A DNA stretch of 64,000 bases from Oculina patagonica. Lineage: Eukaryota. This document shows positions 1,136-59,600 of this stretch, piece after piece; position 1 is the first letter of the stretch, and every line of letters starts with the position of its first letter. The position numbers and the translations under genes are program-made. The notes beneath the pieces are model-generated. The model was not told where the DNA came from. It did no database searches and saw only the letters and a list, made by a program, of their open reading frames with translations. The DNA lies in contig NC_135769.1 in the NCBI RefSeq assembly GCF_052425735.1, positions 32,302,001 through 32,366,000 of the forward strand, given 5' to 3'.

Positions 1136-4100
1136 ATGGAAGAAGAAAGATTGGTTTCAGATGAATCAGGGTAAGTGCATTATCTCTTGTAGTTATTGCG
1201 GTAAAATGCGTGTAACTTTAATTTCGAGTTATAAACAAGTTTTTAATTTAGAACGGTTAAATGTTTGCAACCTATTAAGCTTATAATTGCAAAAATACAA
1301 TGACCATTGTAGCTGGATTTTTCGAAAGTTTGAAAACCAGTGCATTTCAAATACAATAAGCTTACTGTGTTTATTGCGCTTTTGTCAGTGCTTAATAAAA
1401 ACATTTTAGCTCATAAGTTCTGCATAATGTAGTGCTATTTGAACGGTAATTAAATGAAGCTTATTAGACAGAAGCAAAATATCGGTTTAGTTCCCAGTGT
1501 TTACAAGGCGGCAAAACCTGATTAATGAACTTTTGCCTGCTAAAATTTTTTAACAATAGGTGTCGAAATGAAAACAAAATGGTTGTATTTACTGTATTTG
1601 GATTGTACCCTCAAGCTGGGCCCTCTATGTGAATTGGCGTTCAAAAGTGTCATTTTCCGTTACTGGCAGTGTTTGCAATAATTTGTAAGAAATATTTTTT
1701 TTGAGGCAGAATCTGCAAATACATCTTGTTGCTAACACCTGTTTTATCTGCTTTTAAAGGAGAGGTGTCTGCTGTCAGCTGATAATAGTACAGTGGAATT
1801 TTATTTTTCTCATACCCTAAATTTTTCAAACCTCTCGATAACTCAACCCAAAAGTTGTCTCTCTTACTTCCGTCGAACATTGCAATGTTACTCCTCCCCC
1901 TAAGTTTGTTTCCCTGGGAGGTTTGAAAATCGGGATTCCACTGTTATTACTGTTTGGGAATCTAGGTTTTATGCACGCCAAATAAGTAATAAACAATATT
2001 TATTATATAAACATCAGTGAAATACCAGGAAATCTTTCGCACGAAAAAATCATATCTTCACACGCGAAAATAACAGGTTATTTTCACATGTGAAGATATC
2101 GATTTCGAAACATTTTCTGACAAGTTTGCCCTGTTTCAATGCTGAATGAACCAAAGTAAATCGATATTGCGCTCACTCGTGAGATATCGATTTGAACACT
2201 CGAAGATAAATTTCATATCTCCGCGCAACCATGTACTATCCTCTATATATATGGGGAAAATAAAAAAAATGTAATGAATTAATGAATACTCTAACTTTAC
2301 AACTTGGTAGGAGTCTTGAACAATTTGTTGCTGTGTGGGATTTTGAACCATCAAAAAAGGATGAATTGGGATTGTCAAAGGTAAATTAAAGGGTCAATTT
2401 AAACATTTAGCCCAGAACAGCCAAGGCATAATATCCGCTGAGAGAGCAGTAAGGACGAGTCATTCTTAATAAACGAAGTCAGGCAATATAGCACAAACCA
2501 ATGCAAGTAGCAACTGAGGCTTTGATGAGGCTTTGCTATGTTGTTCTATCATAGGCTATGCTCTCTGCTAATCCTGGCTAATTTTATCAGATATGTCCAG
2601 GATTGAACGCTAATGAGATGCACGTTCCTCATGACAGGCATCACAAAGTGTCCTCATTAATAAAAGTTCACCAAAACACACCAAAATCTATCATATATGA
2701 AGTAATATGGAAATGTCAAACAGCGCAGTCAAACATGAAGTACTCATTAAACAATACCTGCGTTCAATCCTGGACATAAGTGAATTTTATTAGCCAGGTT
2801 TAAAGCAGCTGGGGGCAGCGCTCGTGCTGAGCCCTGGGCCCTAGCTTGATCTGCAAGGGGTTCAACCCCTGATGATGTTTGCCACAGGGTGAAATCACTC
2901 ACATGCTTTCCCGTTTGTTTCATCTTGTCCCTCCCACCTCACCCATATATATTTGGTTACCCCTCTCCACAACAACTGTGTGGTGTGAAGTGCTGGGCTT
3001 TGTTCTGGTTGCTGGCATACCACAACCAGTTCCCCCAAGCACTGGGAGATCGTGGGTACCAGTCCGGCACGAGCTACCAATGCTGCAAGTGGCTGTTTTA
3101 ATTACCTCTTGTAAGACCTGCAAACTACATTTCTCTTCACTGCCTGTCCATAATTAAATAATTATTTTATTTGGTTGTTTTCTTTTTGCTTTATTCTGGA
3201 GACCAGGGTAGGAATTAATTATCCTGAATCATGATCTTTTTTCAACTACTCTACCTTTAAGTTTTCTCCCTGTGTTAAAGTATAAGAGAAGAACAGTTTT
3301 TATCATTTAACATATGCTTTCAAAATTTTATTTATTTTTCTTTCTTTGAATTTTGAAATACTTTTAAATGGCAGTTTTTTTGCATGCATTTTTTTTTCAA
3401 AATGACAAAAAGTATGGTATTATACAAAGCTACCTATAAACTACATGTGTTTATTTGTAATTCTTTATACCAGGGAGATATTGTATTTGTGGTTAAGAAG
3501 TATCAAGATGGCTGGTATAGAGGAATACGATCAAAAGATTTTCAGGTACAATACATGTTGAGTGTTGAATAATTATTTAGCTTTGTTACAATATGCTGTT
3601 CAAGGAAATATCCATACCCACCACATGACAGGTCACTGAAAATTCTGAGGATAAGGGAGGGCGAGAGGGAGTTTCAAAAGACAGAGTTTAAAGTGTATAT
3701 GACATGAAAAATATTTCCTGCTTATTTAAAAGGCCTTTTGAAATTCAGTAGAATGACGTTTTTCTTTTTGAAATATCTTTTTTTGTTTCAGAGATATTGA
3801 CGTTTTTGTATTATGCAAATTAGATCAGTGATGACGTCATAAGAATTGACTCTGGCTACGTTTACACGGACACGGTTTCATTTGTAACCGCATCGAAAGC
3901 GATGCGGTTATGCCTTTCGTTTACACGGCACCGATCGAGACCACTACTGTAATCGGGTCGTTTTGAAAACGCTGTCAAAAGTGGAGCGTTTTCAAAACGA
4001 TACGGTTTCGTTGTCGTGTAAACGGTCAAAAACGGCGAAACCGCATCGATTTGAAAACGGCCATGTATTTTGGCACGAACTAAAAAAAAAAATGGTAAAA

Positions 4101-5565
4101 TACTGAATAAATAATATCTCTAAAACTATTAAAGCAGTGTTCTTGAAACTTGGCACCACAAATGTGCATCACAAAAGAAACAAAATGTCACTCTTAGGGC
4201 TGTTGCCATGACAACAGTTTTGCCGCTGGTGCTGTCTCAATAAAAACTGAAATTCCCAGTTTTTGTCTTAACCAAGAACCATCTAGCGCAGCCAAACCGA
4301 TGGTGGGAATTAAGGCAATATGGGAACTATGTCTGTTCTAAGCGGGACCCTTTGTCTCACTTTAGAGGTCAGATATGGAGATATTTGTCTTTTTGACAGA
4401 GAGAGACTGGAGCTGAAAGAGTTGCTATGGCAACAATACTAAGGGTGTCACTTTGTTCCTGTTGTGATGCACATTCGTGGCCCCAAGTTTTAAGAACACT
4501 GCTTCAATATTTCCAGAGATGTTTTTTATTCAGTATTTTACCATTTTTAGAGTCAATTTTTATGATGTCATCGCTGATCTAATTTGCATAATACAAAAAC
4601 GTCAATATCTCTGAAACGTAAAAAGATATTTCGAAAAGAAAAATGCAATTCTTCTGTATTTCAAAAGGCCTTTCAAATAAGCAGAAAATATTTTTCATGT
4701 CATATACACTTTAAAGGAAAGTATGAATCGTAATTGCAAATTACCGGAAGGTTTGGAGGAGAGGAAGTTCAAGCTTAACACCTTCCTTGAGAGCAGGCTT
4801 TTAGCCAGGATTTAAAAAGTGGGAGCCCAAAATTTTTATAAGGCCTGACTTTGTGGACCCAAAGGAGGGCCTGAGAAGCATGCAAGATGTTGTGAGTTAT
4901 GAGTGCAAAGGTATCTAAAGATTTCCAAATTTGCTAAAAAAAAAAACCCTCTGTATACAGCTATTCATATTAATTTTCTCTGAAAAGTGGCCATTAATAG
5001 GACTCCTGGACTCCCACCTGGCTTAAAGCTTGTATGAGAGGGCCATAGATGTTTTCTAGGACAACATAACATGTCGTCACCTCTTTTGTTTTTTTAATTT
5101 GCCTGATCCTGTTTAGCTGATCAGCTTTGTTATTTGCTGCATGCTCAGGCCTTGTCTTAATTTGAGAACATGACTCATTTGTTGAAGAATATATACCCAT
5201 AATAATTATTGTAATATGTAGATCAGTCCAACTTAAATCATCCAGCCAAATTGTCTCAGTTTGAACTAACATTTCTCTGTCATCACCAGGCTGGGTGCTT
5301 TCCTGGGAATTTTGTCATGAAGGCATCAGGAGAAGTTGGAAATACTGACTGGTAAGATGAGATCAGAAATACATCAAATTTATAAAGGTCAGGGGATGAC
5401 TTCAAAGGGTTCACTCAGCAAATTGGTTTCCTATACCTAATTGTACAAGTCATGTAAAAACATTGTTTATCCTAGCCTTGGTACACTCTTTTTTTTTTCT
5501 ATAAGAATCTAGTTTATACGAATATCGAGGTTGAAATTTGCGAATTTTAAAGAATATTTTAATAA

Positions 5566-19888: not shown

Positions 19889-20383
19889 TTTCAGTAGATT
19901 AAGGTACAGTAGGAGCCAGTCTCCCTGCCAGCTAGCTCACTGTCTAACTTCATTCAGCTGACCTTTTATCACGAAGTGTGGACTGAATATTATTAGCAAT
20001 TTTTTTTTCACTCGATAGTGATGTTAACAAAATTTTTCATAACAGTCACTATCCAGTGAAAAAAAACCCAATCACATTCGCTAATAATATTCAGTTACTG
20101 TTGACATCTTTTTGACAGCGCTCCATTGGGATCTGTTTGTTTTTACCAATTAAAATCAAAGAGGAGTAAGGAGACCAAAATTGACTTAAAAGTGCCACCG
20201 TAATGTAAAGTCAACCCCAAATGTCTTGAAATTTGATGGGTTGAATGAAATTATGGAACATCCCATCAGAAAGCTGTCAATAAGAAAGTGCGTATCTGTT
20301 AATGACTCACTCTTTTGACTGTTGACTAAAAAATAACACACTGATAACACTCGTGTTTTTATTTTTGTTGAAATACTCTAAGC

Positions 20384-21228
20384 TAGCCTAAATTTCAGAC
20401 ATCCCTCTGTGCTCGCCTGCTTGCCAGAAGGGACGTCTGAAAATTTGAGCCTAATGCCGTCCGGTGACGTCACTACACTTTGGTTTTAATTCATGCGGAA
20501 AAGTTTCTGTCGAGGCCATGAAATTGTGAAAGAAAAATCGCTTCAATAAAGGATTACAGGGTATAAAATTGTTTTAATAGTAAACTATTGAAAACTTGAG
20601 ACAAATGAATGAGATTTTAATCGACTGCAGGCTATATTCTTTTACGGGACCGATTTAATCTGAACTGATTTGCTTTAAGCTTATCTAGCGATCAAAATAT
20701 AATATGTTACGCAGCGAACAAATACAACACACTCGTGAGTACTTAAATGAATCAATTTAGACGGTTACTGAGGCATCAAGAAACGGAATTCAATACAAAA
20801 ATATCCTACTTGACTGTGGGCACTGAGTTCAGAAATCACTGGCGCATCGAGGCTGCAGGACATAAGCGTCGAGGGGCTTTGTTGACAAAACAAGAATACA
20901 TATATAAATTTGGCAAAACACTGCATGTCAAAGCAACGAATGCCGCCAACTTAAAACCTACCGATTTCCATTACTATTCTTCATCCGTAAATGACTAATA
21001 AATTCATTTCTGGGAAGGTGAACTCCTTCGAACTCTTTCCAAACCTCTCGCGCGGTAAAATTCAGTCATAATTTCACATAATTATGCAATTAATTTTTAA
21101 ATCAACCAATCAAAATCACTACCCGGTTTTCGGGTAGTGACGTCACCGGACGGCATTAGGCTCAAATGTGTTCAGACGTCCCTTCTGGCAAGCAGGCGAG
21201 CACAGAGGGATGTCTGAAATTCAGGCTA
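20384..21228. mobile_element. Non-autonomous DNA transposon with TAG..CTA termini, ~90-bp TIRs and 9-bp TSD (AcademH- or MULE-like)
   Basis: ACTCTAAGC|TAGCCTAAATTTCAGACATCCCTCTGTGCTCGCC ... GGCGAGCACAGAGGGATGTCTGAAATTCAGGCTA|ACTCTAAGC. Confidence 0.85.
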
Positions 21229-21594
21229 ACTCTAAGCAAACTTGTAGAAGACAAGCTTTTTTATAAAATAGAAAATCACAACCTTACAATACAAATTGCC
21301 TATGGTCACAAAACTTTTTAAGGAACGTTTACACAGGAAATTTTTGTTGCGGAACTCAATGCAATTTTAACGCCACAAGATCGCAGAAGACTTCCTGCAA
21401 CTTCGGTGCGACAAAAATTGCATTGTGTTGCGAGACAAAAAACCCCCGTGTAAACTGGGCTTTAGTTCTCCCAAACTTCCTTAATTCTCTGCTTGCATCA
21501 GATGCATAATCATGACAGATATAATAATAAATATTAATTTCTAAATAGCATGAAGAGCAGGAAGGAGAAAACCTTTAAAAAACTGTTTCCTATG

Positions 21595-23516
21595 TTAACC
21601 CAACAGTTCAGTCTCAGCTTTCTTGTCCTTAACGCTCACACCCTTACTTCCTAAAATATAAAATCTCAGTGGCTTAAGAGCTGACTCAGATCCATAGGAG
21701 TGTATTCCTATTCTTGTTGATGTCACTATAGTAATGTCTTTCTTTTGAGGATTCTTGTCATCTTCAAGCCAGAACCTATCTGAAGTTGCCATGTCTTCCT
21801 TATTAAGATTAGCTTTTTCAATGCAAAGAGCTTGACAAAGCTTTGAAGGCCCATTGGTCAACTGAAAGTCTTTCAACTTGCTTCCACTGTCTCTTCGCTT
21901 GATCCCTCTGAAAGATTTCATAGAATCTAATCCTGGAATATAAAAAGATCTGGCTTTGGCTCAACAGTGCTGGTGTTTTACTCTGTTTTCCATAGCATGC
22001 AGCAGCTAAAGTATTGCTACCCCCCTCCCCCCATCCTCTAGTCTACTGCAGGTTATTTTTTTCAACAGCTATGTTACTAACTCGGAATTTTGCCAGGTTT
22101 TTTTTGAAAGTAAATTGCCTTGCTAAAAAATAAGACGCAATAACCCAAGCCAGTGTTCACACCTAGACTGTCTGATCCGGAGACCAACCCAGGCCTTAAA
22201 GGTCACCATGCAATGTTTGGCCTACTCACAAATGCTTATGCTAAGAAACATGAATATACTCTTCAAGAACAAATGTACACCCATTTCCCCATGAGCCATT
22301 CCATTTTATATCCACCCCCCCCCCCTCCATTGATGAGGTAAGTCAAAATGGCTTTCCTTACTTTTAAGGGACTCGCGCTATATAGGAAAACAACTGTCTA
22401 AATGCACGCGCAAAATGGCGCAATTAACTGTAAAAGCGATGTACACGCAAAATGATAAATTTATTGAAAAAAAAAAAAACGCATCACGTTTGTTCTTCAG
22501 CTCGCTTGCGGTTAGTTCCACTCCAGTTTGCTTGCGGTAAGTTCCACTCCAGTTTGCTTGGGGTTAGTTCCACTCAGGTTTGCTTGCGGTTAGCTTTTAT
22601 TTGTTAGTAAGCAGCACTTTTTTAAAAAATTGTTAACTGTAACACTAGTGTAGTACTACTTTTGTTTACGCCATTTTGCGCGTGCATTTAGACAGTTGTT
22701 TTCCTTGTCCCTTAAAAGTAAGGAAAGCTGTCAAAAGTTACCCCCGAAGAAAAAAAGATCAAAGTGCCGACATGATACCCCCCTTCAGAAATAATCCAAT
22801 TTTTGAATTTCCTTCAGAAAAAAAGCCATCTTTTCCCTAACCCCCTCATAAATATTCAAAAGATCGAAAGTGCCGACAGGGCTACTCCCTCAGAAATGAC
22901 TTCAAAAAAACCCTTCAGAAAATCTCATCTTTAGGGGTGGGGGTGTGAAGATAAAATGGAATGGCCCCATGCCAGTGAGTTAAGAACAGTTACTGAACCC
23001 ACCCTGGAGAGGCTCCAAACCTCTAATCAACACACAAGCGCCAGGTTCCTGACCGCTGATGTTCAGACAGTGATACATTCCGTAAATAATGTACACATAA
23101 GCTGTTCCCGGCGCCATGTACATGGGCTCAGTGCGAGAAGTCCGTTTACCTCCAAACGCATGGCAAGCTTTGTCATTCTCACCCAGATAACCTTCAGTCT
23201 CAACTATCCGTCCACACAGCACCTCTTCATTGTCAAGAACACGATAAAGCAACTTTCCCAAGAGTTGTTTGGCCAAGTCTTCTGTGGGTGTATCGTAAAA
23301 AGACCTGCCTAGTTTGTTCAAAGACGAGCTTTTGTTCTCAAGCTTCAGTTTAGCTTTTTTGTTAGGTGAAACACATGAAATATCATCAGAGTCTGTTTTG
23401 AAATAGATGCTTTTTTCGCCTTCTTCTTTGATTTCAACTGACAAGTCTTCTTTTTCAGTTTTGTCGTTTATACGAGGCCCGTTTCGATTTCTCTTCGCCG
23501 CCTTACGAGCCGCCAT
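21595..23516 (-). CDS. MPG: DNA-3-methyladenine glycosylase (AAG/MPG), 2 exons: 23516-23003 and 21932-21595
   Basis: [54 protein letters not shown]|[23 protein letters not shown]: hallmark motifs of the AAG family. The phase-1 GT-AG intron joins the two track ORFs. Confidence 0.95.
22350..22729. mobile_element. MITE with long TIRs and an internal ~29-bp tandem repeat, in the MPG intron
   Basis: GCTTTCCTTACTTTTAAGGGAC...AAAACAACTGTCTAAATGCACGCGCAAAATGGCG is inverted at the other end. Flanks GTCAAAAT and GTCAAAAG. GCTTGCGGTTAGTTCCACTCCAGTTT repeated 3-4 times. Confidence 0.7.
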
Positions 23517-24053
23517 ATTGTTTCTGTCGATTTGATTTGTTGTGTAACTCACCACGAAATGCCCCTAGTCGCGCCCGTAAATATCGGGGGGCGCACTGTC
23601 ACTTTAGCCAAGTACTGCAACACATCAATGATTTGTTTGTCGTTTGTTTGTTTGTTAATTTATTATTTTTTTTGTCTGCATTGCATCTTAAATATTGCAA
23701 AGGAGAAGAGTAAATAAGATATTTTTTGTTCGTATTTTTTATTTCTTATCTACAATTTTTATCTCTACAAAATAGAATTACATCATATCTTTTACAAGTA
23801 AGAAAATAATATTTTTAAACAGACCTATACAAGACATCCAAGTGTTATTCTAATCAGGGCTTAGGTCACACGCAGTTCACAGCTCCCTAAACAAGCCATG
23901 AAATTATTTTAGTACCAGTAATAATGAAACGCCATAAAACGTGCACCAAATTAAACAGATAGTCTGATAGGGCATTACATGTATTAAAAAAAACTCAAAA
24001 GGAAATATTTATGACTACAAAATGACACTATTCAATACATGATAATAAAATTA

Positions 24054-26245
24054 TTATATATTTGGCAGTATTTTATGGGTTTTTTCTTTGGTTGCAGCAC
24101 GTTCCTGTAGTTTGGCCAATAGCATTTCACAGTCATCAGCAACTATAAGAATATCTTTGTTTTCACCATACACAAACCCTGCCTTAACAGCATTTTGAAT
24201 CTGAAAAGAAAAGAAAAACCAATAAATAATATCACTGCAGTATTGATAATGCTAAAAAATACATGTAATATTTCCTTGAAAGAGAAATCTTATCCACGTA
24301 CCCATTCCAACAGGCTACCCCAATAATTTGCAACATTCAAAACTCCTATTGGCTTATCATGGAGTCCAAGCTGGTACCTAACAAATAAACAAACAAACTT
24401 AATCAGACAGTTAAAAAGAAATTGAATTTCCAAAATTGAATGGAAAGTAAAGTTACCAACTCTTTGTTGACACATGAAACAATGATTTTAATGACTGCAT
24501 TCTCACCATGTGATCATTTCCAGAAGTTCTTCAATGGTGCCATAACCTCCTGGCAAAGCTATCAGAGCATCGGCCTTAAGAAATAAATAAATGATCTAAG
24601 CTTCAGAGTAATAAGCACAAACAAGAATACGACAACTCAGCTCAGCACAATAGAGGGAAGTATGATTTTAAAGCCAAGGCCTTAAAAACTAAAAACTAAT
24701 GTGCATTCAAGCCTTCAGTCAGATAACTTCACTCTACAAATAATAACTAACAATCATAATGATATTTATTATTTAATTAACATAAGTAACACAATTATGC
24801 CTAAAATATTATTTAATTATGTTACATGAAAATTCTTAGCCCCATAAAATTAAGTAAGAAATTATATAGAATTTATTTTTATATCCATATTTGTTATCAA
24901 AAATCAATGGAAAGGGCATAATTATTGTATAAACAGGAATGCTCACAAAAATGATAGATTGGACATGTTTGAATCAGAAGCTGAATTATTTTCAACCCCC
25001 CACATTTATGTCATCTTTTACACTGCATATAAACTATAAACCAAAATAAAAAGCTTAGATCTGTCTCCTATAACTACCTGTTCTAGCATGCTCCTTTTCC
25101 TGGTATGCATATCTTCAACCAGTACTGTTTTACCAACACTGTCCAAGTCTTTAGGATCTAAAAATAAAAACCAAAGCTGGTTTTTATTTGGAATTGTTGT
25201 TTTTTCAGGAGGGAGGAAAACCGGAATACCAGAGAAAAACCCTTGGAGCAAAGTGTGAACCAACAAACTCAACCTGCATATGGCCCCAGGTATGAAAATT
25301 GAACCCCAGCCATACTGGTGGAACGCGAGCACCCTCCCCACTACTATCCCTCCTCCCCCTAAAAAAACTATTTAAGTAAATATAGCTCATTTCTCATCCT
25401 TCACCAAGGTTAATGACTAGGTTAATGACCACCAGGTACCAGCTTGGACTCCACGATAAGGGCCAATAGGAGTGTTGAATGTTGCAAATTATTGGGGTAG
25501 CCTGTTGGAATGGGTACATGGATTAAGTGACAGGGGATGATTGAAGGATTTTTTGGTGTTGAACTTTTCAATATCCTTGAAATCCCAAGTACCCCCCCCC
25601 CCCCTGGATCTGACAGAACGTTATTGGTTGTAAATGAAAACATTCTGCAATGCTTACTTCTTGTAACAAAGAACTCAGGAAGAAATCCAGTGACTTGACA
25701 GCCACCGTCAGCAACAGTCTTAGCTACAGTACCCATGAGTCCTACATTTCCTCCTCCATATATGAGGTTAATCTTGTTTTTCACCAAGCATTGGCCAAGA
25801 GCTGTAAATAATTTAAAAAACAACAAAATATGAACATGTTTGTTATTAAAAATATATGAAAACAGTTTGAGCATCAAAAACATTATTTTTATTTCATTTC
25901 CCCTGACTCCCCTCTCCTCCACGATCCAAATGAAAAACAATAGATGAAAATCAATGACAACGGATGAAAATTGGTGATTATCAATACAAAATCAATGGAA
26001 ATCGATGAAAGTCGATCATGTTCAAAGTCATCGATTGGTCAGACCCCCGGATCAGACCGGCCAGAATATTTGGCAAATTATAAAAAACTTGTAAGACTTT
26101 AACAATTAATCCCTATAAAAAATCTAATAACAGATAAAAATTACACAAAAGTTATTCAAACAATGGTACCTTTAGCGCCTTCCTCGAACCTCGGATCATT
26201 ACCTAAGCTGGAGCCACAAAACACAGTAATGGTCTTCAGCGCCAT
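24054..26245 (-). CDS. LOG: LONELY GUY (LOG) family nucleoside 5'-monophosphate phosphoribohydrolase, 196 aa, 6 exons: 26245-26170, 25801-25658, 25157-25078, 24574-24507, 24377-24302, 24200-24054
   Basis: Spliced protein: [67 protein letters not shown]...[72 protein letters not shown].... The exons total 591 nt, all GT-AG and in phase. VFCGS, YGGG.GLMG, MH.RK and PGGxGTxEE are LOG signatures. Confidence 0.93.
25203..25352 (-). mobile_element. tRNA-derived SINE fragment in LOG intron 2
   Basis: GGAGGGAGGAAAACCGGA...GAGAAAAACCCT...AACAAACTCAACC pattern typical of anthozoan SINE2 repeats, with a degenerate tRNA head. Confidence 0.6.
25434..25523 (+). pseudogene. Inverted duplicate of LOG exon 5 with its splice junctions, inside LOG intron 2
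   Basis: Reverse complement of about 24292-24379, with 3 substitutions and a 2-nt (GG) insertion. Confidence 0.92.
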
Positions 26246-27971
26246 TATGAACGTGGGGTAATATTTTGCCAGGCGTTCCTATGATCTCCTTCCCAGGTTC
26301 CACTCGATCATATCTGCCGTTTTGAACATCTGCCGGCCCCCGGGTACCTGCCCTCCATGCTCCATCTATTCTCGATCCATCGCGCAGAGAAATGACCGTG
26401 ACGCCTAAAGTTTGCAGTTTTTCGAGAACCGTTTACTGTTCATAGCTTAGTAGAGAATGGCAAAGATTGCCCTGGAGAAAAGGCTCAATCGCAAGACGTG
26501 AGGGACACGTTAGAGATTTCAATTTCTTTTCTCCTTTATTTTTTTTTTGGGGGGGGGAGGGGTGCGGGGCTGATTGAGAATTTGATGTGCGTTGAAGACA
26601 GACTACATGTTCTTGCCCATTTTGCCTTGTTTTTCGACTTTTCTCATCGCGATTATCTGTCCCATAAGACTGACAGTAACCCGCCATCAAGAAACTTTCT
26701 AGCCGCTGAATAAAGATTGCTTTAATCAGTCGTGTCAGCACTTTTTGAAGCTCATGTCAAGTCCAGAAAAATAGCCATGAAGTCTGCACCATTTTGACAA
26801 TTTTTTACGGTTAAACGAGTGTCCGAAAAAAAAAAGAAACGGAGATGTGATGTTACACGCGTTTGTCAGAAAAGCAAAAGTAACCCGTTACATACGTTTA
26901 TTCATAAGAATTATTTCTTAACTTCAAACTTCATTCGCAATTCACATATTATTTTATTCACATGCAGAGCTTAGCTTGCCATTAGAAAATTTAATAACTC
27001 ACTTATTTGCAACAAAAATAAAATTCCGCCCCATTAGAGTGCGTACTTTCCTCGCCACAATGAAAGACTATATATTTTCTAAAGCGGAGAAAATGTAATA
27101 AATTACACCGTTAATCGGCTAAAAGTAAATTGAAAGAGTAGCAAAACGAAATGAAAAGTGTACAACTAGCTGAATAACAACTCAAAGAAGAGAGAAACAC
27201 TTTAACAAAAATGAATAAGACGGTTTGCCTGAAGAGCACAATGTTGACCAACCCGACAACAACAACAACAACAACAACCTTTGTCAACCGAAAATGATCA
27301 CCCCGCCCTTTTACATCTCTTTTTATACCATACTTGATAATTTGCTTTGTCCAGTCAGAAAATTTTATAAAGAATGTTTGCACATCGAATGAAACTTGGG
27401 TATTCGATAAATGTCGCGAGAAAAGCGTACCCTTCAATCCTCTAATGGGGGAATGCTGTTTTTATTACGGAAAACTTCTGTGTGCTGCTGACTTGCAAAT
27501 ATCTTTAAAAGGTTTGAAATGTAACAAGAAGGCCCAGACTTAATGTCGAATTTTTCGTGACCAGAAGCCAATTGTTTAACTTAAGAAAAAAATCGGAATC
27601 TTCTATGTTAAGAAGCGTCTTTGTTACCAAATGTAGCCAATGGTTTATGCTCAAAGCTAGTGTCGACAAGTTTCTTTGTTTTGTAAAACGTTGAAGATCG
27701 TTGAACAATGAAGATAGTTTTATAAATGTAAATCAGGAACGAAACCACAATTCAATGGATCTTGTGAACATTCTGATTTGCGGCTTATGAAAAAATAGAT
27801 GAAAATTACATAAATCGATCATTAATTATTGAATGTAAAACGCTGACATGATGGTCTGGAAAGTCTTGTCTCTCCGCATGAGCTGCAATACTAACCGGTA
27901 GAACTGAAATTAAGAACAGTTAAAATCCACCGAGTCTTGTAAATTACTTCCTTCGAGTCTTGCGGACAGCA

Positions 27972-56683: not shown

Positions 56684-59600
56684 TCATCGCCACTCTGGGA
56701 ACTGTTCTTCAAGTCCTGAATTCATGAGCCTGATAGGCAGATCTTCCATGTTTGGAAGCACAAACATGTTCTGCAATGAATATAATATTAAAATTAAAAA
56801 TTGAATGACACCCGACACCATACCTAATGAGAACTGGGTGCTGGTGATACCCAGGGCTTTCAAAATGTTTTAAGTAGACGTCAGCACCTGGAAGTAAGTG
56901 TAGGTGGTTGTGACACTGAGCTTGTTTGTCACGAACTGATTGCTATGTCCAGAGTCACCGGCGACATATATTCAAGTAGCCGGCTTGTCTTGAAAACCCT
57001 GGATACCAACTATAAATTGCCACCGGCCTAGGAAAACTAGAAGATACTGGTGGAATGTTGGCTTTTACTAGCATACGCTTACCAACCAATGATTGCAACT
57101 AATAATTTAGGGTTTCATGTACAGTAGAATCTCGATTTCTCAATCCCTTAATTTCGTGAGCCTCCCAAAACTTTGATACCCCAGGGGGTACTCGAAATGT
57201 TAAGTGACGGGGATAATCGAATGGGGGCAAAAATAAAGACCAAAAAAAAACCCTAGGGCTTCCACCAAAACCACAAAAAAATCCCTTAACCAAAAAATAA
57301 CCCCCAAGAAATCGACAGCAAAACACATTTGTTTGTACTTTATTGGCAGAACTACATGTATGCAGCCAAAGCACTACCACAAATCTTAAGATCATTTAAA
57401 ATACCCCCCCCCCAAAATCCTTATTTTTATTAAAAAATACTTGCCAAATTTTCCCACCCCCCAAAAAAAACCGGAATGGAAATTTTCAAACCCCAAAAAA
57501 TCTTTCTATCATCCCCATTACTTAAAATCCCAAGTAACCCCCCTGGGACTGATACTGGTAGTCATTTTCCCTCCCTCAGCCGAACACTGCAATTTTTATC
57601 CCCAATTTCTTGAATAAATAATAATAATAATACATAATATTTTAAGAGGAGGCCTCCAATCACCTAGGGGTGGTTTTCAGGGGGGTCCCCTAAAAAAAAA
57701 NNNNNNNNNNNNNNNNNNNNNNNNNNNNNNNNNNNNNNNNNNNNNNNNNNNNNNNNNNNNNNNNNNNNNNNNNNNNNNNNNNNNNNNNNNNNNNNNNNNN
57801 NNNNNNNNNNNNNNNNNNNNNNNNNNNNNNNNNNNNNNNNNNNNNNNNNNNNNNNNNNNNNNNNNNNNNNNNNNNNNNNNNNNNNNNNNNNNNNNNNNNN
57901 NNNNNNNNNNNNNNNNNNNNNNNNNNNNNNNNNNNNNNNNNNNNNNNNNNNNNNNNNNNNNNNGCTCTGGAGGTTTGAGAGATCAGGATGCCACTGTAAG
58001 TATTTACATGTTCTCACAGGCTTAGTTTGGAACAGCAATCAACTTGTTTTCTTTCAAACACCATACTGTACAGAATGATGTGTATAATGTTTCTGAAACA
58101 CTTGACTTACCCTGAACTCTTGTTTCAGCTTTTTCTCAATCCATTCAGTGACATGAGTAAGTTTAACTTGACGATCACCAAGCTTTGGTCTGGCAGACAC
58201 AAACAGCAAAGGAGGTTCTCTGAAACCATACCTTTACAAAAAAAAAAATGGCCTTCAATGCACACAAATGAACATGCCCTCAGGGCTCGAGACTAACGGG
58301 AGCCAACTAGCCAAAGGCTAGTTAAAATGATTTTTGTTTGGTTTTGGCCTATCACTAGCCAAAATGGCTAGTAAAAAAAACAGTAGGGAAAAAAAACCTT
58401 TTTATAAAAATTTCTCTAAGAAATTATAAAAAAAAAAAAAATTAATATTATAAAATGTTTAAAAAAAAAAAAATTTTTTATAAAAAAAAAAAACCCCAAT
58501 TTTTAAAAAAAAAAAAAAAAATTTTTAAAAAATTATTAAATCTTTTTTTTTCCCCCCCCCCCCCCCCTTTTAAAAAAAAAAATAATTGAAAAATTTTTTA
58601 AAAAAAAATACCCTACTGATAGATTATACTTCCTGTATCTCCTCCAATTAATGCCCGGCTATCCTTTATTTCAAACTTGGCCTGCTGGACTTGGTGTTTA
58701 TTTGACTTCCTGTAATTTATTTGAGCCTGCGTTGTTTAAGCAAGGGTACTTAAATACTATTTTTGACAGACATTCTTCTTGTCATTATACATACAGCTTA
58801 TTACACCTCAAATGCTCTAAGGTATTAATTTAAAACTCTTCTTTGGAGACTACGCATTTAGCCAAAACTTGGGCTCATCCTCGGTGTAAGAACCTGTGAA
58901 ACTCACTGGTGACGTAAAACAAAGAACAAACAAAGCAACAAAGAGCTGTCAAAAACAATAAAGAGAAGGAAAACAATAGCTCCAAAACAAAGAAAAATAT
59001 CACAGGTTCTTACACCGAGGTAAACCCAAAATTTGGGGTTTCATAGAGAAAATACGGTCATTATGTTAACTTTGTTTTCCAGTGAATGTAGAGATTAGAC
59101 AAACTTCTATTGATTATCTTTTTACAATAAATTCAAGATGTAAGTTAGAATGATAAAAGTTAGCCAGCCTAATCCAAATTCTACCAAGAAGAGCAGAGGA
59201 AATGCATTCAAGGACATTATGGAGAGTTTTAATGCAGTCACCTACCAGAGCCTGTTTGTAGGAGGTGGTGGAATGTTCAATGCAATAGTTCCTTGGACTT
59301 TTTGGACCTCCACTGACAAAATGATTGGAAGGTTTGAAAACCTCTCAGCTGCTCGTTTGACGATACCAGTCTCTGCTGCCTTCTTTACCCACTTAGATTT
59401 GGCCAGCCGTTCAATCACGCTGAAGAGCTTGCGCTTTGGTCCATGTTTAGCAGAGAAACCTAAATGTTTTTTCACTGGAGTACAAGGAGCACTTTCTGAC
59501 ATCTTATCACTAAGCCCAGCAGTTAGTAAGCTTTTATCAGAGGTTTCTTCACCTGAGCTTTGCTTTTGAGAAGACAGTTTTCTTCTTTTTAATTGTGCAC

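Follow-up and report, generated by a model that had tools for sequence, protein, structure and literature searches.

A likely templated insertion of an inverted exon copy in the sole LOG gene of the coral Oculina patagonica

In the coral Oculina patagonica, intron 2 of the LOG gene contains a near-perfect reverse-complement copy of exon 5 of the same gene, splice sites included; LOG belongs to the cytokinin riboside 5'-monophosphate phosphoribohydrolase family. The gene lies within a 64,000-nucleotide (nt) stretch of contig NC_135769.1 (positions 32,302,001 to 32,366,000 of the forward strand; RefSeq assembly GCF_052425735.1), which we call the window and in whose numbering all coordinates are given. 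The genome is a 529-Mb assembly, and the window sits on a chromosome-scale contig. The features on which the argument turns are these:

24054-26245, minus strand: LOG gene, six exons, 196 amino acids (gene model, Pfam and an RNA contig)
26245-26170, 25801-25658, 25157-25078, 24574-24507, 24377-24302 and 24200-24054, minus strand: LOG exons 1 to 6, in that order (gene model)
24292-24379, minus strand: sense arm, which runs from the AG acceptor through exon 5 to the tenth nt of intron 5 and so includes the GT donor (repeat finder, alignment and gene model)
25434-25523, plus strand: inverted exon-5 copy within intron 2, lying antisense in unspliced LOG RNA (repeat finder, alignment, genome search and a contig from an independent DNA sample, X2)
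25460-25461, plus strand: GG insertion in the copy, a bulge in the predicted duplex, not found in X2 and hence polymorphic

The modelled protein matches PF03641 (LOG/Lysine_decarbox) with an E-value of 5.2e-38 over profile positions 1-130 of 131, and it matches PF18306 as well. LOG proteins are marked by the conserved motifs GGGxxGxMG and PGGxGTxxE, and the translated model has GGGNVGLMG in exon 2 and PGGYGTIEE in exon 4; exons 3 and 4 between them carry MHTRKR and PGGYGTIEE. The NCBI record for the Oculina patagonica protein, ACROYT_G039107, agrees with the model at 100% identity, all five introns of the model are GT-AG, and its five exon junctions are each matched by an RNA contig in a run that we call X7. 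A protein search of the whole O. patagonica genome returned this LOG locus and no other. Exon 5 spans 76 nt (24377-24302), with its AG acceptor at 24379-24378 and its GT donor at 24301-24300, and in the gene model its skipping shifts the frame and brings a stop immediately after ...EMIT. Transcription passes the acceptor of intron 2, a 500-nt intron, about 780 nt before it reaches exon 5.

The repeat finder reports the two arms as a 62-nt pair at 97% identity (24292-24353/25462-25523) and a 27-nt pair at 96% (24353-24379/25434-25460), and alignment places three substitutions between exon 5 and copy (in gene sense, T24359/C25454, T24341/G25474 and G24297/A25518). Identity is 96-97% within the copy and drops to the background level just beyond both ends: the homology ends abruptly, 2 nt beyond exon 5 on the upstream side and about 10-13 nt on the downstream side, and the copied piece comprises exon 5, the adjoining 2 nt of intron 4 and, from intron 5, about 10-12 nt. 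Because intronic nucleotides were copied on both sides, the template must have been unspliced DNA or RNA of the LOG gene, and because the genome holds one LOG locus and no further copy, that template was this same gene. Source exon and copy lie 1.05 kb (about 1.1 kb) apart on the same chromosome. A genome-wide search with the copy as query matched only the copy itself and exon 5 (E=1.7e-31), a result that excludes a chance origin. Second copies of the other LOG exons were looked for in the window and none was found, leaving exon 5 as the only duplicated one.

The copy is also present in X2, an independent DNA sample from another study, labelled 'coral metagenome'. A 307-nt X2 contig (record 13, depth 39.7) covers 25196-25504, thereby crossing the left junction and reaching 70 nt into the copy; misassembly is excluded for that junction. 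The contig lacks the GG insertion at 25460 (depth 39.7 of 39.7), and the 2-nt bulge is therefore polymorphic in the species; relative to the assembly it also carries 25300 T>C. X2 holds, besides, a second version of LOG that is about 8% divergent (18 differences over 233 nt, with several indels) at a depth of about 13, as against about 52 for the main version. This divergent version is seen at 24182-24414, ~24950-25070, 25874-25960 and 26180-26265, and it could be a divergent haplotype or come from a second coral in the sample. We considered whether the exon-5 copy descends from it and rejected the idea, since the differences in exon 5 and its donor do not match: the divergent version differs at 24293, 24294, 24298, 24317, 24332, 24368 and 24341 (there with another base), and the copy at 24297, 24341 and 24359.

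Repeats crowd the rest of intron 2:

25408-25431, plus strand: 12-nt tandem duplication (GGTTAATGACTA / GGTTAATGACCA), 2 nt left of the copy, read from the sequence and present in the X2 contig too
25510-25577, plus strand: 5' head of a repeat that we call repeat B, with about 50 nt following, resembling a miniature inverted-repeat transposable element (MITE); the initial ~14-18 nt of the head (GGGTACATGGATTAAG) are at the same time the end of the copy, and their origin is ambiguous
25578-25607, minus strand: second repeat B head (G-run and TACTTGGGATTTCAAG), in opposite orientation directly after the plus-strand head
25186-25367, no strand assigned: interspersed repeat resembling a short interspersed nuclear element (SINE), which takes up much of intron 2, is of very high depth and has over 1000 candidate copies at about 80% identity

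A head of repeat B consists of a G-run and, after it, GGTACTTGGGATTTCAAGTGAC. In its copies elsewhere in the genome, as in the one at 57187-57538 of the window, two heads in inverted orientation are separated by 340-400 nt, as against only about 60 nt in intron 2; judged from its sequence, the intron-2 repeat looks like an internally deleted, rearranged or shortened copy. It is at this repeat that the right end of the exon-5 copy lies. The right end reads GGGTACATGGATTAAG in the copy, GGGTACGTGGATAAG at the exon-5 donor site and GGGTACTTGGGATTTCAAG in the repeat head, and a three-way alignment gives GGGTAC-TGGA as common to LOG donor site, copy and head. Donor site and head match at 11 of 13 positions, and homology to repeat B extends into the last 14 nt of the copy (BLAST; L019 q111-173, L020 q114-173). 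The left junction is without clear microhomology and offers only the palindrome GGTACC and the adjoining 12-nt tandem duplication.

Some copies of repeat B share more sequence outside the G-run (GATCC(C)CAGGGG…), and its MITE-like class and termini are putative. The core of the SINE-like repeat (…CCGGTTTTCCTCCCTCC…) may resemble the conserved central domain of widespread metazoan SINEs; a permissive Rfam search across 23500-26800 matched zero families.

At the syntenic LOG loci of Desmophyllum pertusum (both tandem copies) and Orbicella faveolata, queried with Oculina exon 5 and with each species' own exon 5, we find no antisense exon-5 copy. LOG is followed on the same strand by Pur_DNA_glyco in all three corals; in O. 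patagonica this DNA-3-methyladenine glycosylase gene occupies 21646-23303. Absence from two other genera implies that the copy is neither ancient nor conserved, and, taken with the segregating indel that weakens the duplex, it argues against a conserved function. Alignment of intron 2 across coral genera gives no similarity, and metagenome contigs scanned with the 30-nt core common to both arms gave no match. Among the protein matches, none is closer to the O. patagonica LOG than that of D. pertusum, and a look-up in A. millepora returned mRNA contigs only.

The LOG loci of the two relatives show duplications of their own. In D. pertusum there are two LOG copies in tandem, 100% identical to each other over 98 nt of exon 5 and its flanks, and in the O. 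faveolata assembly exons 3-4 are duplicated inside a 10-kb LOG gene model; these may be real recent events or effects of assembly or haplotigs.

The predicted consequence of the copy for the transcript is a long hairpin. When a 1,471-nt stretch of the pre-mRNA is folded in silico, the helix between the arms is complete in both the minimum free energy (MFE) and the centroid structures. Folded by themselves, the two arms make 92 pairs, four of them G.U, at -166.3 kcal/mol, as against -40.8 +/- 4.8 for shuffled arms, and the X2 allele, which lacks the GG, is computed to pair better still (-171.7 kcal/mol). Adding exon 5 to the nascent transcript gains about -142 kcal/mol, and the pairs of the helix have a median probability of 0.999. 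The predicted helix buries both the AG and the GT of exon 5, and its loop takes in exons 3 and 4 together with introns 3 and 4; from the end of the upstream arm to the exon-3 acceptor there are 276 nt, and from the exon-4 donor to the start of the downstream arm 127 nt. On these models, unspliced LOG RNA can form a duplex of about 90 base pairs (bp) that would mask the exon-5 splice sites and loop out exons 3-4. A sequence-only reading of this stretch had described 25434-25523 as the reverse complement of about 24292-24379, taking in the whole of exon 5 with its splice sites at a cost of three substitutions and a 2-nt insertion; it had set the antisense arm in intron 2, the sense arm in exon 5 and exons 3-4 in the loop; and it had proposed that skipping the 76-nt exon would shift the frame. 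Repeat finder and alignments agree with the first of these claims, both folds with the second and the gene model with the third.

What reaches the mature transcript is another matter. X7 consists of the assembled contigs of one run, which we took as RNA; the LOG contig covers exons only, as fits RNA. That contig (contig 23, 592 nt) joins the six LOG exons canonically, exon 5 included, with 0 mismatches, and so indicates that LOG is expressed, that exon 5 is part of the predominant mRNA, and that this exon bears no A>G difference from the DNA at consensus level. The X7 contigs show no exon-5 skipping and no back-splice but only the five canonical joints, although rare forms may drop out of contigs, and intron 2 has no coverage there apart from repeats. 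Neither the exon-5-skipped product (residues 1-122) nor the full LOG protein is on record in assembled public contigs, a result that is uninformative because the collection may leave out this genome. The O. patagonica genome does encode ADAR-type deaminase genes and a Dicer gene, whose products could act on a duplex of this kind, and RNA editing has been documented in coral (PMC5850803). The order of transcription bears on all of this: since intron 2 is short and complete about 780 nt before exon 5, it would usually be removed first, and the antisense arm with it. We infer that kinetics argue against a large effect of the duplex.

We consider it rather probable that the copy is a young, lineage-restricted templated insertion, produced by microhomology-primed repair or template switching, which is near-neutral and has only a latent potential for double-stranded RNA (dsRNA). 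In descriptive terms the copy is a templated inverted insertion, a reverse-complement copy of nearby sequence with sharp boundaries, and in those tests of a functional class that could be run it is unconserved, the available RNA displays neither editing nor alternative junctions, and its stem carries a segregating indel. Its youth follows from identity of 96-97% inside and none outside, from the polymorphic bulge, and from its absence in two genera. There is documented precedent for template switching during replication that yields a reverse-complement copy, and with it an RNA hairpin, in a single step (PMC5453318, PMC8794818, PMC10710096). In the present case, a DNA break or stalled fork may have occurred at the end of a MITE-like repeat already in intron 2. 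The 3' end of the repeat's bottom strand, with the motif GGGTACTTGGGAT, would then have annealed to the near-match GGGTACGTGGAT at the exon-5 donor, about 1.1 kb off and on the other strand, and the annealed repeat end would have primed some 90 nt of synthesis through exon 5, after which the product would have been end-joined on the other side. Such repeat-primed repair would explain why the copy is inverted and sharply bounded, why a splice site lies at one of its ends and why a small tandem duplication lies close by. Capture by a transposon of the Pack-MITE type was considered and rejected, as the exon fragment is present once, against tens to more than 1000 copies of the repeats on either side.

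Several observations sit less comfortably with templated insertion of a near-neutral piece. The exact empty site cannot be reconstructed, intron 2 being unalignable between genera, and the right junction (about 25523-25534) is seen in the assembly, the X2 contig ending at 25504. Published screens for template switches operate at tens of bases (PMC5453318), and the copy here is about 90 nt taken from about 1.1 kb away. Both of its ends fall 2-12 nt from exon borders and the left end is a blunt join at GGTACC, so that some coincidence remains in where they lie. Two of the three substitutions are transitions kept as G.U wobbles, the third making a C.U mismatch; the preserved pairing fits selection for the duplex, but with n=3 it is not significant and says nothing on selection. 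Finally, rare isoforms drop out of assembled contigs, in which circles, small RNAs and low-level editing are invisible as well, and hence a minor functional output could go unseen in X7.

Other origins for the copy have to be weighed against this account. An RNA-templated route shares much with it: a reverse transcriptase working on repeat RNA would have jumped at the 5' end to unspliced LOG pre-mRNA, across GGGTAC-TGGAT, and the chimeric cDNA would have been inserted. The plus-strand order of exon-5 sense sequence and repeat 5' head, in the same orientation, is as expected for a template jump at a 5' end, and the copied intronic nucleotides point to an unspliced template. Yet a 3' end or tail is missing from the repeat fragment, after which comes an inverted head, the paired inverted heads of the genomic copies suggest a DNA element rather than a SINE, and neither poly-A nor a target-site duplication can be read at the copy; the RNA route fits less well than DNA repair, and we regard it as improbable. 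The sequence-only reading had also raised the possibility that the copy is what is left of an inverted gene duplication, since decayed or trimmed. The tandem LOGs of D. pertusum and the duplicated exons 3-4 of O. faveolata do speak for a duplication-prone locus, but those duplications are direct and not inverted, exon 5 alone, with about 12 nt, has a second copy in window or genome, there is no second LOG in the genome, and the fall from about 96% identity to background within 2-12 nt at both ends is the pattern of breakpoints and not of decay, all of which makes such a remnant very unlikely. The chance that the copy is an assembly artefact, born of a chimeric or mis-joined read, is smaller again and close to nil: across the right junction there is no independent contig in the runs examined, but the left junction, with 70 nt of the copy, is present in the X2 sample at its depth of 39.7, in an allele of its own that lacks the 2-nt insertion and carries the 25300 change.

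Whether the copy does anything is a separate question from how it arose. The sequence-only reading had proposed regulated outcomes, namely skipping with nonsense-mediated decay (NMD), adenosine-to-inosine (A-to-I) editing, endogenous small interfering RNAs or circularisation of exons 3-4, and had suggested looking for the element in related species; these outcomes find no echo in the sole RNA contig, which is canonical and free of skipping, back-splice and A>G change, nor in D. pertusum and O. faveolata, where the lack of a copy leaves no conserved element to speak of. A functional cis hairpin, acting on a regulated fraction of transcripts by masking the exon-5 sites (with skipping, frameshift and NMD) or by serving as an ADAR substrate whose intronic copy resembles an editing-site complementary sequence (ECS), has several observations in its favour. 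The duplex is very stable and dominates the predicted fold, it covers both the AG and the GT of an exon whose skipping gives a premature stop, LOG is single-copy and hence unbuffered by paralogues, ADAR-type genes are at hand in an animal group with documented editing, and pairing is preserved as G.U at two of the three substitutions. Against this, the main LOG mRNA shows canonical splicing and no editing, two other coral genera lack the copy, the duplex-weakening 2-nt bulge segregates within the species, and intron 2 is removable long before exon 5 is made; we hold such a role to be improbable. It is also conceivable, if decidedly less probable, that the arms drive back-splicing of exons 3-4 into a 148-nt circular RNA (circRNA), or feed Dicer to yield small interfering RNAs (siRNAs) that hit LOG mRNA in trans. 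The arms do bracket exons 3-4, at 276 nt and 127 nt, inverted repeats of 30-40 nt suffice for circularisation in vector assays (PMC4201285), and a Dicer gene is present; the X7 contigs, on the other side, have no back-splice joint (though contigs seldom show such joints), the downstream arm is itself an efficiently spliced exon, and the copy is unconserved and polymorphic.

A more speculative variant, to which we give little credence, would see in the copy a newborn self-regulatory dsRNA element: were intron 2 spliced slowly, for instance under certain conditions, the duplex might recruit ADAR or Dicer or block exon 5 and so throttle the sole LOG gene. Taking splicing, editing, circles and small RNAs together, some real effect is unlikely. 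That the copy is an evolved regulator is not supported. It is probably near-neutral or slightly deleterious, with at most a small fraction of transcripts diverted to ADAR, Dicer or NMD.

The window holds further inverted repeats. An element of about 850 bp at 20381-21231 has terminal inverted repeats of ~61 nt (possibly ~100 nt) at 97% and is probably a non-autonomous DNA transposon; other inverted repeats of the window, this one among them, were considered as exon copies and rejected, being transposon terminal repeats. Nested inverted repeats (22295-22325/22935-22965, 22351-22372/22707-22728 and 22384-22432/22657-22705) surround three 26-nt tandem units (22495-22593), and together, at 22295-22965, they make up a foldback-type element in the region of the neighbouring glycosylase gene. 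A large palindrome at 3687-4715 has 167-nt arms at 92% (3687-3853/4549-4715) and an inner pair of 133-nt arms at 83%.

If the copy is a repair scar and nothing else, it is a clean natural case in which a single mutation has put a near-perfect 90-bp antisense version of a coding exon into the transcript of that exon, with junction homology that points to a repeat end as the primer of the event. It would then also show that a gene which looks essential and has no second copy can tolerate such a structure, presumably through the early removal of the intron in which it lies. An effect of the copy on splicing, editing or small RNAs, if there is one, would show the birth of exon-targeting hairpins, such as ECS elements, hairpin RNAs (hpRNAs) and proto-microRNAs (proto-miRNAs), and the alleles with and without the 2-nt bulge would offer a natural test of splicing against folding kinetics in a cnidarian. 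The self-regulatory variant, if true, would amount to an editing or siRNA hairpin caught in the act, made in one template-switch step from the gene's own exon.

The copy bears some likeness to several known systems. In the exon-intron duplexes that direct editing through an ECS, as at the GRIA2 Q/R site (PMC9479739), an intron is likewise complementary to an exon of the same pre-mRNA and folding competes with splicing; classical ECS duplexes, however, are short, imperfect and conserved and give site-specific editing, whereas the LOG duplex is about 90 bp, near-perfect and unconserved, and its RNA contig is unedited. Paired inverted Alu repeats, which promote circRNAs (PMC4201285) and loop-out exon skipping (PMC13019027), also form long-range duplexes that bracket exons, and the arms in LOG are well over the 30-40-nt minimum. 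In LOG, though, one arm is a constitutive exon with its splice sites and not an intronic transposon, and the X7 contigs contain no circular or skipped product. The hpRNA loci of Drosophila, which yield endogenous siRNAs, and the proto-miRNAs of plants are born from inverted duplicates of their target genes, and there, as here, an inverted gene part gives near-perfect dsRNA against that gene. Those loci are separate transcription units with short loops, in contrast to the LOG arms, which stand 1.05 kb apart in the target's own pre-mRNA, one of them in an intron. There is a resemblance, too, to template-switch mutations and templated insertions (the four-point model, microhomology-mediated break-induced replication and repair of the polymerase-theta type), with which the LOG copy shares a nearby reverse-complement copy made in one event, a hairpin, abrupt ends and putative microhomology at one junction. 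The event that we infer here differs from these in its scale, about 90 nt copied from about 1.1 kb away, in its template, a coding exon of the same gene, and in its apparent primer, the end of a MITE-like repeat.

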